Assembly: GCA_011109175.1 (NCBI GenBank)
Contig: RDEW01000026.1
Location: 186,001 to 250,000, forward strand
DNA length: 64,000 bases
Source of the DNA: Dicyema japonicum
Taxonomy: Eukaryota; Animalia; Dicyemida
Reading direction: 5' to 3'
Part shown: piece after piece, positions 11,075 to 32,247 of the stretch
Layout of the letters: every line of letters begins with the position of its first letter
How positions within the stretch are numbered: the stretch's first letter is position 1
Position numbers and translations under genes: made by a program
The notes under the pieces: generated by a model
The model's input: the letters and a program-made list of their open reading frames with translations, nothing else
Told to the model about the DNA's origin: nothing
Databases searched by the model: none

Positions 11075-18447
<7,373 letters not shown>

Positions 18448-19289: not shown

Positions 19290-19850
19290 GGGAGCTTATC
19301 CACGTTGTTTTATGGCATGTGGAATGTTGGAATTGGGTGTTACATATAGCTGTGCCAGGATCCCCATTCCACGTGGTCCAATAAATCGTTCGTATACTTT
19401 TTGTACCCCAACTTTAGCATTCATAAAAAGGAATGAGGAAGACTTTAAGTGAGATACAATCTTGGAAAGTTTTTGGTAGAAATCGCCCAATTCCTATGAG
19501 TCTTTAGAAACGTTGCCACTATGTGGGAGGTACACAATGGAAATTATCCGTCTATATTTCCCTCTGAGTACAATAAGTAAGTAGTAGAATGACACTAATC
19601 CAATCATTTGTCTTCCAAAAGATATGTAATCCGGAAAGTAATCCTTGTGCACAGCGAAACCCTATCCATAGAATAGAATGGTGTAGGACTACTCTATAGT
19701 TTCTAGAACGTTCGTCAAGTCCTTCTCTGACCTTCGTCTCTTGGAAACAGCAGACTGAACATCGATACTTCTCAAGGTCCAGAAATAGTCCCTTCGACCA
19801 GCCATTTAGGCCCCTGGCATTAAAGGATAGAAAACCAATAGGAATCACTA
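19290..19850 (-). mobile_element. Degenerate RTE-like endonuclease (5') fragment
   Basis: IGFLSFNARGLNG..LDLEKYRCSVCCFQETKVREG and GDF..NAKVG-like motifs of an EEP domain, interrupted by stops. Confidence 0.7.
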
Positions 19851-20431
19851 AAACACGTATCTACATGAGTGCGAGAGAGGGAAGTCATCACCTCAATCGA
19901 AAAGTGTTTAAAATATCACATTTGTTGTATAATTAAGTATTCGATGGATTAATTCTTATATCAACAGAGACTAAGTTGCTAGCATGATGGAAAATCGTCC
20001 GGTTTGCAAGATCACGTAATAGTGACGCGATTGTTCTTAAAACATTGTCCTTACAATTTGAAGAATAATCATAATGGCTAGCATAATATTCAAGACATTC
20101 GGGTAGAACATGTCAGTTACCGTTAATAGTTGTCATTTTATTATTGAGAACTTTACAATCACGAGGAAGGTATATTAAAGTGTCATCAATTGTATAGATT
20201 TGTGTTCTCACCTATTACAACTATGTTCCATACGTGGTGCCTCATTCTCTAACTTTTGGTAATTAAAAGAGTTAATGTCTCTGAAGAATGAAGCGTGAAT
20301 ATTAGTGAGTAATAACAAAGATCGTGATTAATGAATCAATAATTGTTCTATAATTGTATAATTAGATTACACTTTTATTGTTTGTTAAAAGTCTAATATT
20401 TAAATACAATCTCACGTTTCTCATTTATAAT

Positions 20432-23400
20432 ATGCTGATTCAGGAACTTTTTAAGAAACAAGTTTTAAAGACACCTTACAAACTGGCGGTCATCGACGAA
20501 CATGAGAGTCTCACATTTGACCAATTGGACACTAAGAGTGACATTTTGTGTAATTATCTCCGAATAAGTGGTATTACTGTCAACACACCTGTCGGCATTT
20601 TTCTTGAAAAAAGTGTGACCTTTATTGTTGCTTACCTTGCTGTTCTCAAAGCAGGTAAATGCGTCTTAATAAAACCCAGGTGGCACGTGCACTGTAATCG
20701 ACATAAAATATCCCGAAGTGATGCTAAAAATGGTGTTGGAGAACGCTAAACCTCTTTTGATCCTAACAAATGCCGATCTCTCGTCCAATCTGACTCATAT
20801 TGGTTATTTGTGTCTCATCATGTCATAGACAGTCATATTAGCATCATTGAACTCTCCAATGAGTGGTACAAAAAACAGCTAATATGCATATCCCCAATGA
20901 AGGAACCTCAACTTCACCAACCGGACAACACTGCTTTCATAATTTACAGTTCGGGACAACTGGAGTTCCTAAAGGTAATAGGGTCTTTAATTTAAGGGAT
21001 TTTGTGTCCTCACAGAGCAGCTGTATTCTCATATTGCTGGCGACACAGACACTATCCTTATGTAGAGGATGATAGGGAGGCATGCAATGTATTCTTTATA
21101 TGGGAGATGCTCCGACCAATAACTAAGGGTCCGTTTATTGTTTACTGGTAAGGAATCACTATGTACATAATTCCCGACTCAGTCATTACCAGTCCTAAGA
21201 GAATTGCTAACTTTATATGTGAAAACAAGATAACAAGAATGTTGTTCACTCCATCACTATTGCTCACAGTTCTGCAGGACTCAAGTATAGATTTTAGTGA
21301 GAAATTTAAGACTATGAGGTTTTATTAGGTTTATATTCTCAGACAAGCCTGGCTTTGTGGAGAAGTCGTAACTATCAGTTTACTCAGTTTGACTGTTCAA
21401 ACCATTCCGTGGGTCACAATCCTCAACTTATACAGTGTCTCTGAGTGTCACGACATTGCCACGTCTGATCTCTCAGTCTTTTACAAACATGCGGTACCTC
21501 AGTTCACTAAACAGCCTTTTAGGATACGTCTAACAGGAAATTTGCCCCAGTTGGGAAGATAAATGAGGAAGTTTCTGTCTACATCATGGATTCTGAAATG
21601 CGATCCCAGCCTATTGGAGTTCCAGGAGAGGTAAGTGATGTCTTTAAGTTACAGATTTATGTCGGAGGGCCTGGGCTTGCTGTAGGATACTTAAACAGAC
21701 CTGAGGTTACTTCAGAAAAATTTATTGAGGACACAAAATATGGAAGACTTTACAGAAGCGGGGACTGGGGATATCTCTATGCTGATGGAAACTTGGAAAT
21801 TTGTGGCCGATGTGACTCGATGGTCAAAATCCGCGGATATTCGATTGAAATCCACGTATTTAGCTTTAGTTGATTTTTAGGCCGTGGAAACAGCTGTAAC
21901 TGAATTGAATTACGTTGATGGTTGCTGTGTCATTGTCCAGGGTGATGAGGGGGAGGAAAAATTCATCGTTTGCTACGTCGTCCTCAAGTATAAGCACAAA
22001 GTCGCCCTCATCAGGGAGGATCTAAAGAAGAAGTTACCATTCTATATGATCCCTTCATATTTCGTACAAATGACTAGGTTCAAGTCATAACTAATTTCAG
22101 TCTCCCTCTTTTACCAACCTCTGGTAAACTGGACAAGAAAGCTTTGCCTTCAATTATGGAAACCAACGAGTCCAATGCAGGAGTTGCTCATCCAGTGACT
22201 GCTACTGAGAAGAACATTTACTCCATCTGGCTGAACATTCTTAATTGCAAGAATATCGATATATACGACAGCTTTTTTGACATTGGGGGGTTAGGTTTTA
22301 ATATGAAAGGTTTAGGCATTCGCTTATGGCAGTGAGACTCGTCTCTGCTGTCTCTGATAAGTTTGACGTAGAAATCGAGCCAGAGATTCTCTACAAATAT
22401 CAAAGTCTTCACAGATTTTCCGCATATGTTGACTGGTTGATAGGAGACATGACTGGTTCTCCTCCTCAAATAGAAAAGTTTGACCTCCAGCAGGAAATAA
22501 TCAATTTTAAGCAAAGCAGTGTAAAGTAATTGGTTCTCTTACCAAACAGACTGGACATGCAGCTTCGTGCCTTTTGGAGATCCTGTCAATATGGAAATCG
22601 ATGGAATAGAGGAAGGATCCTTCTCACTGGAGCAACAGGATTTTTCGGGTCCTTCATACTTCGTTCTCTATTATTGAAGACTCAGGTCTCTTAACTACTT
22701 GTATTTCCAGTCTATCATATATTGTCTTGTTCGGGCAGATGAGAAACAATCTGTTTACGAAAGACTACAAAACGTGCTTAAAAAATATAAGATAATTGCT
22801 GTCTCCGATAGTGGGAGAGATCAAAGTCTTCCTTGGTTATCAAAAAAGCTTTTCATGATCGAGTCCATGTTGTCAAAGGTTTGTTTGGGGGGTAAATTAA
22901 GGGGATATTACCTTGACCAACATGGGGATGTCAGATGATGATTATTGTCATTTGTCCTACGAAATAGACTTTGTTATCCACGCCGCTGCAGTTGTAAACA
23001 TGCTGTATAACTATGAGGTCCTCTGATTTGTTAAGTATAGACTTTGAGGACATCGAACGTCATTGCCACGAAAAATATCCTTCTTTTTGCAGCGGAAAAC
23101 AAAATAAAACCTCTCCAATATATTAGGTTGGTGATCTCTGACTTAGGTTAGTACAAATGCGGTATTTCCCCACTCACTGAGGGACTGCAGTGAGGAAACC
23201 GACATTTCAGTTTATTCCGATCAACTCAGTGACGGTTATTCTCAGAGTAAATGGGTGGCTGAACAGCTCGTCCAAAATGCAATATCTCTCGGATTCCAGC
23301 CACCATATTCAGAATGGGTTTAAATTATTCATTATTTAAGGAAATTTGTTTGCTGCCAAGGATGACGGGTTGTGGAACGACAAGGACTTTACTTATCACA

Positions 23401-24772
23401 TTTTGAGGGCGTGTGTAGTGGCTCAGATGACTCCAGACATAGAATGGGAGATTGAAGGGACCCCCGTAGACTTTGCAGCGGACACAGTAATCTCAATTAG
23501 TGGGGACATGACTACAATTGGACAAACCTATCACATAATAAACTCAAAGACACTTAATTTTAAGTTATTTTTGAGATTTGCAATTTTAGATATGCAATCG
23601 ACCGATTACGATTTCTTGGCTATCAACTAAAGACAGTCTGCTTTAACGAATGGAAAAAGTCAATTTTACAGAACCACGAGTTGTCCACTGGTCAAAGGAT
23701 TGCTAAACTCGTGGATTTATGGGTTTCTCTGTTTTATTTAATCTCAGAGATAAGTTTTTTGAATCCTTCAGTACTTTCAAGAATGGAAGGGTCACTGAAT
23801 ATTTGTCTCCCGAAACTTATCCAGTAATCGACCAGATTCTGTTTGACCTGTACATCAATCAACTGATTTCTAACCACCAACTTCCTTCACCACCAAGTAC
23901 TACTTAACTAAAATACCAGAAATCCACTTTACAAAGAGATCATTGGATGGAATCGTTGCCATAGTAACAGGATCTTCCAGTGGAATTGGAAGGGCTATTG
24001 CAATGCATTTGGCTTTGGAAGGGGCAAAAGTCGTTTTGGTAGCTCGAAGGGAACAAAAGTTAAAGGAACTTGTGCATCTTATAGAAACAAATGGTGGACT
24101 GGCTATTTATGTTTTGGCTGATGTAGTGTCTAGAGATCAGGTTGATAAATTGCAAGATTTTAGATGAAGCAAATGATGGCGAGGACTAACTTTGTTTTTG
24201 GGAGAATTGATGTATTAGTGAACTGTGCTGGTGTCATGTATTACACTTACATGAAGAATATGAGAGAAGACCAATGGGAGAGACAAATCGATATAAACTG
24301 CAAGGTTTTGTCTCTTCTGACATTTAGGGGGTCGTAAATGGCGTTGGAGCTGTTCTCCCATCAATGCTGCATAATGGTTCCGGACATATCGTAAATATTT
24401 CATCTGACGCTGGAAAAAAGGCAGATTTGTTTTTTATAGTAGCCTTTTGCTGGCTTAGCCGTTTATTCAGGGACCAAGTATTTTGTTGAGGGATTCAGCG
24501 AGGCTCTGAGACAGGAAGTTGCCGGGAGTGGTATAAAAGTGACCACGATACTCCCAGGAGACGTTCATTCTGAGTTACTGAGTCATTCAACGGATATTGA
24601 GGTATTTTCACCTAATATTGGTGGATAGGCTAAATCTGAGTGTGATATGAGCAAGAAACATCATATACTGAACCCTGAGGACATTGCAAAGGCAGTTGTC
24701 TATGCCCTCGCCCAACCCAAACATTGTGCTGTCAACTCAATTCTCATAGAGCCACGGGAAGCCCCTATTTAA
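20432..24772 (+). CDS. NRPS-like A-T-R-SDR reductase, ATRR (glycine betaine reductase)-like; multi-exon
   Basis: A domain: YSSGTTGVPKG, REACNVFFIWEMLRP, YRSGD, GRCDSMVKIRGYSIE, SGKLDKKALP. T domain: FFDIGGHSL. Thioester reductase: ILLTGATGFFG, GYSQSKWVAE. SDR: VAIVTGSSSGIG, NCAGVMYY, YSGTK, ending ILIEPREAPI*. Domains are joined in frame after removing 22-30 nt introns. Two single-base frameshifts (20953-20955, 23296-23297). Confidence 0.88.
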
Positions 24773-25022
24773 TTATTACTTTTGAGTAACAAATTATTCA
24801 ATAATAATACTACCATTTTATTATTTTTTGTTACGACAATGGCTGAGATCATACTAAGGCTCTCTTGACAAATTCACTCCTTGGAAGATGATTATGTTGC
24901 TTTACACTCCAAACTTCACACGATTGAATGGTTTTTACGAATCCAAGTACGATCTGAGCACCTCCAATATGTGCTTTGTCCCTTCCTGTATTTTAAATGG
25001 TACAGATTTCATCATGTTCTAA

Positions 25023-25912
25023 ATTATTATTAAAAACCAAAAATCACAGACAAATTAATTAACTACATAGCCGTCAGGTGATTCCGGCCGCCTCGAGTAG
25101 CCATCTCATTCTTGCTCGGTGTTCTTCCTGGGTTCCAACGCATTTCCAGATTGGGCGGGGGTTTTATAACTTTTTTGGAGGGTAGTAAGGCTCCGGTTTT
25201 CCCACTAATTCCTCAAAAGGTGTAGGGTTTAGAAGTGTCCAAGAAAACCTTTTGCAAAGCCTTACTGGCCATTTTTGGAAGATATTGATTTTTTCTATAT
25301 TCCTGTTTGATAGGTTGGTTCCCCATGCAGCACACCCGTAAGTTAGAGACGGTTGAATATACTGCACGTAGAGCGAGTCCAAATTTGAGTTGAAACACCC
25401 ATTATATTATCCAAGGAGTGTTTTAACAAAATTTAGCATTCGTTGTGCCGAAAGATGACGTTGTCGATGTATTTGCTGAAGGTCAAGAGTGGGTCGTAAG
25501 TTACGCCCAGTATCTTGACCGAGTTGGTCGTGGGATTGAGTTTCCATTTATGGTTACACATGGAGCGGAGTTTGTCAATCTTCTGTTTGTTGTGAAAATT
25601 GTTGTATAAGACTTTTCGGGACTTGTATGAAAAATGTTCTTAACGAGCCAACAGTTCAGATCGTCCAATGAAGCTTATATCCGGTATAAAGCAGTATTAA
25701 CGCACTGGTCTTTGACTGCGACGATTAAATCATCCGCATATGTCAGAACCAGAGTATCGTCACTGGTAAGGAAGGGCATGTCATTCAAGAATAGGTTGAA
25801 TAGGTGTGGTGAAAGTGGAGATCCTTGAGGGACTCATTTGGAAGGAACTTGGTAACTGATCTAGTTTTTTCCAGCAGTTACTCTTCCTCTTCTTCCATTT
25901 AGGAACATAACA
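25023..25912 (-). mobile_element. 5'-truncated Jockey/I-like LINE with intact 3' end
   Basis: PQGSPLSPHLFN, TYADDLIV, YLGVTYDPLLTFSKYI, YVQYIQPSLTYGCAAWG, ending MRWLLEAAGIT*, then GTGATTTTTGGTTTTTAATAATAAT. Confidence 0.9.
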
Positions 25913-29818: not shown

Positions 29819-30658
29819 TTAAACGTGGTCAATGTCGATAATATCCCTGGATGGTTGGTATTCGTCCAGTAATTTTGACTCAACAATAAGAATGCCCTGT
29901 TCGACGTATGCCTGAATACACTCCAAGTCACAATTGTTAGGAATACTGTACTCACGTGTGTATTCGTTGATTGATTTGCATCCCTCATATATTTCTACAT
30001 GTTTCGCAAAAAAATTAAGTTTATTTTCACCTTCATTCAATGTTATTTTAATTTCACTACTGTCCACTTGTTTAACATTCAGTTTGAGTCTCCAAAGCTT
30101 GGTCCCCAGTATGTCAATTACTCCAGGATCGTTTATAGCTCGAAAAACTCCAGGACCACTTCTTGTCTCAGGCGGTTGTTCGCTAATTCTAGGAGCAGAT
30201 CTAAATCGACTGTCAGATGCAATCGAAGGTCTGTAATCGGGTGGGTCATTTACGGGACCTTCAATTGTAAGGATCCCATCACTCGAAAGAGTGCTCACAA
30301 GAGCGTCAGAATCCACGTTGTGAGGGATACTTGCTGTCTTTTTGAAAATTTTTTCAGAAAAGGATCCATCACGTGTTGTCCCCGTTTTATTGGCTTCCAC
30401 AATAATTAATCCATTCTCGACTTTAGCTGTAATGTCACCAGCTTCAAAATCACCAACATTCAAGCGAATCTGATACTTTCGAACTCCATCCTCGTCAGAA
30501 ACAAACGAAGAATCAAACCAAATTGTGGAAGAAAGTCTGCTACTAAACCGCGGACGGAGTATTTCCAGCCTCTCCTCATTGAACCGTCTGTCAAATTCTT
30601 CAATAAACCGCTTCTGTCTCTCAGAAAAACTTCGGGGATCGTTCTGAACAGGCAGCAT
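29819..30658 (-). CDS. Small heat-shock protein with two alpha-crystallin domains (p40/major-egg-antigen type), intronless
   Basis: MLPVQNDPRSFSERQKRFIEEFDRRF N-terminus; ACD1 YQIRLNVGDFEAGDITAKVENG..SIPHNVD..VSTLSSDGILTIEGP; ACD2 LKLNVKQVDSSEIKITL..YTREYSIP..AYVEQGILIVE. First ATG at 30658. Confidence 0.9.
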   Translation of the reverse strand: MLPVQNDPRSFSERQKRFIEEFDRRFNEERLEILRPRFSSRLSSTIWFDSSFVSDEDGVRKYQIRLNVGDFEAGDITAKVENGLIIVEANKTGTTRDGSFSEKIFKKTASIPHNVDSDALVSTLSSDGILTIEGPVNDPPDYRPSIASDSRFRSAPRISEQPPETRSGPGVFRAINDPGVIDILGTKLWRLKLNVKQVDSSEIKITLNEGENKLNFFAKHVEIYEGCKSINEYTREYSIPNNCDLECIQAYVEQGILIVESKLLDEYQPSRDIIDIDHV

Positions 30659-32247
30659 AAAAATTTTCGCCAACCTAGATGATAAAATTGAATTTTCGCA
30701 TTTCCCACATTTTATCGGACACAATCGATAACCTCATAATTTACGACAAAAATATTGACTTTAATTGCTCTATCATATATGATCAATAAATATATATCTA
30801 AACTACAGGATATTTATTGTACCACACATTTAATTGACTGTGAAATAATCCTACATTCACCATTTTTATGCCTTAAAACCATTCTCGGACAAATGTTGGA
30901 AACCACAATTGCTTTTTCCCTTACGAACATTTAGCTAACATTTGTCTGTCAGTCCTTTTCTTTAATAATTTATATCTTTTTTACAAACCGATTTTTTCAA
31001 TGAGACATATCTGGTTCACGAACATAGATTCCATATCCTTGATTTAATGTTTATGTTTTTTTAATGAGCTAATGTTTATGTGGCTCTTTGTAAATTGGGC
31101 GTTACTTGTCAGTTTCAACGCCTGTTTTGGGTAAATATCAGTAATAAAGTTTTCAGATCTTTGGAAAGCTGGACGTGTTCTAATTGTGAACTGGGATTTA
31201 TAATTTGGTTTCCTCCCACTGGAATAATATCTATCTTATTACCCAAATAGTTTGCAGTTTTGAATAATCGACAGGGTGATACTAATACATGCCTCTGTCC
31301 TGTATTGCAAATAGTTATTCTTGATGGCTTTAAAAAAGATTAGATTATGTTTTTCTATTTTCCAGTACGAGCACTGGATCTGTAAACAAATTCTCTTGCA
31401 AAAACGTCTTTATCAAGTCGAATGAAAGCACACTTGACTACCTTTATTGAATCATTAAGCACAAACGCTTGATTAGCTTTATTGAATCACTAAGAGGCCA
31501 CAAAGTAAATCGATTGAAGGAGATCTAATTTACGTCAGATGACTTCTGTGAAAACGCCTGTCCCGAACCTAGGAGAGAATATTCCTTCTGCCGATCTTCA
31601 TGATGCCTTTTATCATCTCGAAGGGGTAGTAGTTGAGTTGATAGACTTAAGACGTACATCTCACGGACCTTTTATCTGAACCTCCTACATTCTGGAGAAT
31701 TATGAATCTTGTGAATGGGATACTTTTGGGAATATTTCTGATTTTGGACGTAAAATTCTATTTTCTGCAAACTGCTCAAGGAAAGATAATAGAATTCGTT
31801 TTATTGCAGTCATCAACGTTTTTCCGGAATGATTGCTTGTCATTCAATAATTAGAAATGTGCCAATTATCGCTGGCCGTGTGAAGTGAAAATCCGTACTG
31901 TAAGGCAGTCGTTCCCAAAGTCCTCGCGGAACCCTTTTGGGCTAATTTTTTGCGGAACCCTTCCAATTCAATTATTACAATTTCATTTAAACATAATCGT
32001 AATAACCAAAAATAAATTTAATGTGAACATTAACTTTTATCATAGTTGTGTAACATTAGGAACTGTATCCTCATATCGTCAGAAGCATTGAGTTTATATT
32101 TTTATTGAAAATCCGGTAAGTCGTTGGAAAAGGTAATAGTGTATTGCCTTTTCTTAAATATCAGGATATTTTGAAATGTATGCTCTCCAAAAATTAAAAA
32201 GGGATATATCTGATTTATTATTAGCACTTTCACGAGAGCCATAATAT

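Follow-up and report, generated by a model that had tools for sequence, protein, structure and literature searches.

In this study, a stretch of 64,000 nucleotides from the dicyemid Dicyema japonicum (contig RDEW01000026.1, positions 186,001 to 250,000 of the forward strand; hereafter the window) was investigated for a gene that an initial annotation, made from the letters alone, had described as ATRR-like. We observed that this gene is probably Dicyema japonicum's own intact orthologue of ATRR, the glycine betaine reductase that resembles the nonribosomal peptide synthetases (NRPSs), as far as this can be judged from its sequence. It extends on the plus strand from the start ATG at 20432 to the stop TAA at 24770-24772, exactly the limits first given to it, and its 24 exons, separated by 23 micro-introns, encode a protein of 1,260 amino acids (aa) with an adenylation (A), a thiolation (T) and two reductase domains (R1 and R2).

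Domain order, active-site residues and homologues

Database, family and structure-bank searches were conducted with single exons or open reading frames (ORFs) as queries, while the joined and corrected model was used for alignment, for tblastn against homologue loci and for the tree. The Pfam models were found along the exons in the order AMP-binding (E-value 1.8e-13), AMP-binding_C (6e-7), PP-binding (1.8e-7), NAD_binding_4 (several exons, best 1.8e-8) and adh_short (3.3e-15, 1.2e-7, 1.5e-6 and 3e-9 over its exons), and NCBIfam added an amino-acid-adenylation domain (2.6e-29) together with thioester-reductase domain models. Residues 3-1260 of the model align with residues 10-1270 of a protein from Aspergillus section Nidulantes at 35% identity (735 bits); measured per domain against fungal ATRR, the identity amounts to 38.5% in A, 28% in T, 30% in R1 and 48% in R2, which is the best conserved. 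The domain order and the collinearity of all four domains with fungal ATRR uphold the A-T-R-R architecture proposed in the initial annotation. The protein does not end after R1 as carboxylic-acid reductase (CAR) and LYS2 do, since a short-chain dehydrogenase/reductase (SDR) domain of 249 aa, R2, follows.

The fungal enzyme was characterised from Aspergillus nidulans (AN5318) by Hai, Huang & Tang in 2019, who described a cage of F201, W204 and W270 with E304 as counter-charge and mutated G1036 and Y1178 (10.1101/559534; PNAS 116:10348). Our section Nidulantes reference carries F, W, W and E at 201, 204, 270 and 304, as well as G1036 and Y1178, in agreement with the published numbering, so that the dicyemid model could be compared residue by residue. 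The aromatic cage is kept as F197, W200 and W267 in the columns of F201, W204 and W270, and the A4 motif NVFFIWE, which in ATRR is without the amino-group-binding Asp (D235 of PheA; mapping from 10.1101/559534), is identical in the dicyemid protein and Aspergillus ATRR. The carrier Ser548 in GGHSL is aligned with the fungal carrier Ser, the R1 tyrosine Y814 (DGYSQSKW) stands in the column of Y811, the R2 tyrosine Y1168 (VYSGTK) in that of Y1178 and the NADPH glycine G1026 of R2 in that of G1036, and the C-terminal ILIEPR..PI is likewise conserved. Apart from E304, where Asp stands, the residues probed or named in the 2019 study are all kept. Both strings read in the initial annotation were recovered, GGHSL being interrupted by the intron 22290-22315 and CNVFFIWE, encoded at 21083-21106, being the aromatic-cage motif of ATRR.

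A word search with one exon returned many short ORF fragments of 60-68% identity on eukaryote-type contigs, whose loci hold AMP-binding, PP-binding and NAD_binding_4 pieces with long introns between them. With the 203-aa ORF of locus L003, which covers the cage region, fragments were obtained from the clam Ruditapes, the brachiopod Lingula and the annelid Paralvinella, as well as from brown algae, cryptophytes, one green alga, Aspergillus fumigatus and Aureobasidium. The A. fumigatus locus consists of a 294-aa fragment, a gap of 53 bp and a 961-aa ORF in which PP-binding, NAD_binding_4 and adh_short were recognised, a single gap between two called ORFs as against the 23 micro-introns of the dicyemid gene. 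More than 7,000 proteins matched the 961-aa ORF, and the 120 best-scoring ones are without exception A-T-R-R proteins from fungi, each about 1,270 aa long, with one from Exophiala dermatitidis bearing the name 'Glycine betaine reductase ATRR'; it is the collinearity with this fungal set that bears out the identity first proposed. The same cage motif, ACNVFF(V/I)WE, occurs in fragments of Ruditapes philippinarum (LOC132741329) and Lingula anatina (LOC106154791), and related fragments come from Paralvinella and Mytilus ('tyrocidine synthase 1-like'); these spiralian homologues are uncharacterised. An exhaustive protein search with a 116-aa piece of the A domain gave only giant multi-module NRPSs, because scores were summed over their many A domains, and is uninformative on ATRR. 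In the PDB no ATRR was found, the top matches being LgrA and other NRPS A domains.

The presence of atrr in 'several protists and invertebrates' was already stated by Hai et al. in 2019 (10.1101/559534), and atrr transcripts of protists have been disclosed in marine metatranscriptomes (PMC9321204). MiATRR (1,306 aa) of the plant-parasitic nematode Meloidogyne incognita was characterised by Zhang et al. in 2024; it converts betaine, and choline as the product and a role in parasitism were proposed for it (PMC11050029). Compared by its published description, MiATRR resembles the dicyemid protein as an animal-encoded A-T-R1-R2 enzyme of a parasite, and differs in niche, plant roots as against the cephalopod renal sac. 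The initial annotation had presented the dicyemid enzyme as a possible reversal of the usual animal pathway; the assignment to ATRR stands, and the reversal is less novel than this suggests, as a clam and a brachiopod have cage-motif homologues and the nematode ATRR is already characterised (PMC11050029).

As a separate observation, fragments of actinobacterial type (names of Rubrobacter and of Actinomycetota metagenome-assembled genomes) share the cage region, with NVFFIWE in P0285 and P0286 and SVFFVWE in P0290, and all three group with fungal ATRR. These fragments are relevant to the published view that only eukaryotes possess atrr. On the 498-kb ENA contig ERZ25039504 (P0286), a gene for a BCCT (betaine/carnitine/choline) transporter is followed immediately downstream by pieces of A, AMP-binding_C and NAD_binding_4, with no adh_short piece among those listed; this neighbour supports a betaine-type substrate for the clade of cage-bearing A domains.

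Integrity of the reading frame and descent of the gene

The initial annotation had suspected frameshifts, and the reading frame is indeed broken in the window at four places, namely 20952/3 (inside SGTTGxPKG), 22826, 23290 and 23690. Logan contigs of three short-read runs (X1-X3, one sample) were placed on the gene. In all spanning contigs, one base is added behind 20952 (G or A, giving TCG/TCA, both Ser), behind 22826 (T or C, giving AGT/AGC, both Ser) and behind 23290 (G), and one is lacking at 23690-23693, where two haplotypes are found (ACC-GTC/ACT-GTT, both Thr-Val). The window's version was seen at none of the four sites in any spanning contig of the three runs. Because all spanning contigs differ there by one base and each of the four differences restores the frame, the four breaks are assembly indel errors and not lesions of the gene, and the frameshifts are not real. 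With the four single-base, read-supported corrections, the model is an open frame of 1,260 codons without stops. Three of these indel errors, which all fall within 4.3 kb, lie at two-haplotype sites and one in a G run. For the Dicyema japonicum assembly as published, PacBio RS II (Falcon) and Illumina (Platanus) assemblies of pooled animals were merged (PMC6736024), which would explain indels at polymorphic sites, provided that the window stems from that assembly. Such an origin is suggested by its G+C, by its micro-introns, a type known among animals only in dicyemids and myxobolid myxozoans (PMC13644364), and by Nextera adapter tails in the 2019 runs. Frame breaks in the Dicyema japonicum assembly can thus be indel errors at polymorphic sites, and pseudogene calls in it need a read check; this is also relevant to other broken frames, such as that of the p400-like gene at 38.6-43.8 kb of the window. 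In the contigs, all six exonic substitutions are synonymous, as are the alternative letters at the indel sites, and the single further variant is intronic. With 8/8 exonic polymorphisms synonymous, the gene is under purifying selection and is not decaying.

When 20300-24900 was translated in three frames, coding pieces of 30-95 codons were seen to switch frame every 90-220 nt, a pattern typical of very short introns. The 23 introns measure 22-29 nt (560 nt summed), with 22 of the GT-AG and one of the GC-AG kind. For comparison we used L002, an invertebrate-type locus on a 933-kb ENA contig, which shares about 60% identity with the fragments of clam and brachiopod and about 45-60% with the dicyemid model in the aligned A-domain exons, and whose splice sites were set by best alignment. 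Its introns are long (122-4,869 nt), unlike those of the dicyemid; nevertheless, 13/15 of them lie at the same codon and in the same phase as dicyemid introns, and the remaining 2/15 are within one residue of dicyemid introns, in gap-rich stretches. This agreement in position and phase, which is independent of the tree and stronger evidence than it, shows vertical descent of the dicyemid ATRR. The gene is thus an old intron-rich one whose introns shrank in place, neither a contaminant nor a recent transfer, and the shared introns suggest that an ATRR gene already rich in introns existed before dicyemids split from at least one further lineage of invertebrates. For the intron that follows aa 615 in the dicyemid, L002 has no counterpart; it might have been gained in the micro-intron genome or lost from the other lineage.

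The tree was computed under LG+C20+F+G4 from 42 rows and 290 columns that cover the N-terminal 300 residues. All cage-bearing sequences form one clade (100/100) against four generic NRPS A domains. Within this clade, the sequences of fungi, actinobacteria and a green alga make up one group (98/90); the other, a separate non-fungal subgroup without resolved order, comprises those of the dicyemid, the clam, the brachiopod, the annelid, brown algae and cryptophytes. A tree constrained to join the dicyemid with fungi was 57 log-likelihood units worse and was rejected (approximately unbiased (AU) test, p = 0.0006), whereas one joining it with the three named spiralians was not rejected (AU p = 0.29). 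The claim of the initial annotation that the gene has resided long in this genome, and is no contamination, has in this rejection and in the introns shared with L002 a stronger support than was available to it.

Gene model and genomic neighbourhood

On the uncorrected window, a shortest-path search yielded a splice path free of stops, which was rejected, as it skips TTGVPKG and the reads account for the break. On the corrected sequence, the shortest-path model misplaced the junctions at GGHSL, at the GC-AG intron of the SDR domain and at the in-frame intron 21631-21654, and these were re-set from homologues and Pfam profile coordinates. The resulting features are given in Table 1. If the in-frame intron were retained, 8 extra residues would stand ahead of the GGxGLAxGY stretch of the A domain, and an ORF-based reading misses introns of this kind. 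The GC-AG intron has the sole non-GT donor of the 23 and is, jointly with one other of 22 nt, the shortest.

Table 1. Exons, selected introns and neighbouring features of the ATRR-type gene, in window positions
Feature	Position	Strand	Content	Basis or remark
CAD-like gene	11200-17000	+	GATase and CPSase ATP-grasp pieces	Broken up into numerous short ORFs; upstream
LINE/RTE endonuclease and reverse-transcriptase-like ORF remnants	19445-19850, 25100-25800	-		Either side of the ATRR-type gene
Exon 1	20432-20654	+	aa 1-74, A domain begins	Pfam AMP-binding 1.8e-13; junction 74/phase 1 common to L002
Exon 2	20680-20802	+	Poorly conserved region	3' junction ambiguous: intron 20803-20828 or 20810-20832
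Exon 3	20829-20974	+	SSGTTGVPKG motif	Window one base short behind 20952
Exon 4	20997-21128	+	Cage motif NVFFIWE 21086-21106; F197 21092-21094; W200 21101-21103	
Exon 5	21153-21318	+		Pfam scan, homologue alignment, L002 intron comparison
Exon 6	21343-21493	+	W267 21350-21352 (= W270); SECHD with D301 21452-21454	D301 at E304 place
Exon 7	21523-21630	+		Homologue alignment, L002 intron comparison
Intron	21631-21654	+	24 nt, in frame, no stop	Recognised from homologues only; junction 350/phase 0 common to L002
Exon 8	21655-21855	+	YRSGDWG and KIRGYSIE core motifs	
Exon 9	21881-22077	+	AMP-binding_C	Pfam
Exon 10	22101-22289	+	A10 Lys K492 in SGKLDKK; first T-domain half, to FFDIGG	
Exon 11	22316-22525	+	HSL; carrier Ser548 22320-22322	PP-binding PF00550, 1.8e-7
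Intron	22526-22549	+	After aa 615	No L002 counterpart
Exon 12	22550-22685	+	R1 NADPH motif TGATGFFG	
Exon 13	22711-22878	+		Window one base short behind 22826
Exon 14	22902-23017	+	NAD_binding_4	1.8e-8
Exon 15	23041-23126	+		Pfam scan, L002 intron comparison
Exon 16	23152-23317	+	R1 catalytic Y814 and K818 in DGYSQSKW	Window one G short behind 23290
Exon 17	23341-23563	+	C-terminal part of R1	TIGR01746, 3e-9
Exon 18	23590-23722	+		One surplus base in window at 23690-23693
Exon 19	23748-23896	+	R1 end and R1-R2 linker	Alignment with fungal ATRR
Exon 20	23920-24140	+	R2 motif TGSSSGIG; G1026 = G1036	adh_short 3.3e-15
Exon 21	24164-24304	+	R2	
Exon 22	24328-24420	+	R2, NISS motif	adh_short profile positions 111-140
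Intron	24421-24442	+	22 nt, GC-AG	Flanking exons = adh_short positions 111-140 and 142-189; read contigs agree with window
Exon 23	24443-24601	+	R2 catalytic Y1168 (= Y1178) and K1172 in VYSGTK	
Exon 24	24629-24772	+	C-terminus ILIEPREAPI and stop	Conserved to last residue of fungal ATRR
HSP20 gene	29819-30724	-	301-aa uninterrupted ORF, two Hsp20/alpha-crystallin stretches	7.8e-21; downstream

The G+C of the window is 0.31-0.45 (AT-rich), with the 20-26 kb region like its flanks, and the published value for Dicyema japonicum is 36.7% (PMC6736024). The neighbours fit the genome in which the gene resides. The LINE-like piece 19555-19848, the sole one scanned, gave no Pfam match.

Proposed reaction, rival explanations and meaning for the parasite

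By homology with A. nidulans ATRR (10.1101/559534), we infer glycine betaine as the substrate and choline as the product. In the proposed reaction, the cage of F197, W200 and W267 would hold the trimethylammonium head of glycine betaine by cation-pi contacts, with Asp301 as counter-charge, and the betaine carboxylate would be adenylated. The acyl group would then pass as a thioester onto the phosphopantetheine arm of Ser548, after which R1 (Y814/K818) may carry out a two-electron NADPH reduction of the thioester to betaine aldehyde, and the fused SDR domain R2 (Y1168/K1172) may use a second NADPH to reduce the aldehyde to choline.

Several points weigh against the assignment to an intact, working ATRR. 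The column of E304 holds Asp301 (SECHD vs fungal CETHE), so the charge is kept and the residue is not; Asp stands in this column also in L002 and L003 (SE(C/A)HD). In the tree, the dicyemid sequence sits on a long branch (1.07) and is skewed in composition, owing to which the sister group was not resolved, and LYS2, CAR and Ebony, like nematode ATRR, are missing from the tree rows. The sole sign of expression comes from run X5 (2017, 12 Mb), in which 0.64 of the sampled 31-mers of the gene are present; the expectation is 0.66-0.68 for a fully spliced transcript and 0.96 for genomic DNA, with 0.93-0.95 observed in genomic runs. The run, judged by its 31-mer share alone (none of the listed runs is on record as RNA), fits a transcriptome, and for expression of the gene this is only a hint.

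The rival explanations were weighed as well. The strongest of them, which we nevertheless consider rather unlikely, is a true ATRR-family enzyme acting on another quaternary-ammonium or sulfonium acid abundant in marine invertebrates, e.g. another betaine, in which case the product would be the corresponding alcohol and not choline. The animal and algal homologues are grouped apart from the characterised fungal enzymes, the change at E304 lies in SE(C/A)HD where fungi have CETHE, the W270 position is F or Y in some animal and algal homologues, and 5/10 pocket residues of the nematode ATRR are unlike those of the fungal enzyme (PMC11050029). However, cage residues and an acidic counter-charge are retained here, the nematode ATRR still accepted glycine betaine although its pocket differs (PMC11050029), and fungal ATRR shows a strong preference for the head group of trimethylglycine (10.1101/559534). 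Far less probable is a CAR- or LYS2-type enzyme (carboxylic-acid or alpha-aminoadipate reductase), or one of the Ebony/AASDH type, with an unrelated substrate. These families share the logic of adenylation and carrier, CAR and LYS2 also the thioester reductase, and weak, partial LYS2 and CAR model matches were obtained from single exons; yet they have neither a fused aldehyde-reductase SDR at the C-terminus nor the aromatic cage motif, whereas here R2 follows ATRR collinearly up to its final residue and the A4 motif is that of ATRR and not FDxS.

That the gene is a decaying or silent pseudogene with real frameshifts, as its four frame breaks in the window might suggest, is equally hard to credit, given that no spanning contig shows the window's version of the breaks, that 8/8 exonic variants are synonymous, and that 1,260 codons run without a stop with the catalytic residues all kept. 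Least credible of all is that the DNA is foreign, through contamination from a fungus or the cephalopod host or through a recent horizontal transfer. It is in fungi that ATRR is found most often (10.1101/559534), but the gene has 23 introns of 22-29 nt, its G+C matches the flanks, and the same contig carries the similarly split CAD-like gene and the LINE-like fragments; the intron positions agree with those of the invertebrate-type L002, and a clade with fungi was rejected. An ATRR belonging to Dicyema japonicum itself hence stays the preferred reading.

On this reading, a dicyemid parasite joins the animals that encode the reverse pathway from betaine to choline. As this kind of gene is already known in invertebrates, the interest of the dicyemid ATRR lies in its retention in an extremely reduced parasite. 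The dicyemid genome has shed most metabolic genes, and that this one was retained under purifying selection despite the loss speaks for its importance to the parasite. It is plausible that betaine of the host, in whose fluid the parasite is bathed, feeds the dicyemid ATRR, in parallel to the proposal made for Meloidogyne (PMC11050029). Our literature search found no paper linking dicyemids and betaine. We offer only tentatively, as possible but doubtful, the further proposal that this parasite of about 5,000 genes has kept ATRR because host glycine betaine is its main or only route to the choline of phosphatidylcholine. The finding offers a testable connection between host osmolytes and the lipid synthesis of the parasite; if the proposal is true, it would amount to a pathway for salvage of a host osmolyte, parallel to the one proposed for plant-parasitic nematodes, and possibly to a metabolic dependency on the cephalopod host.

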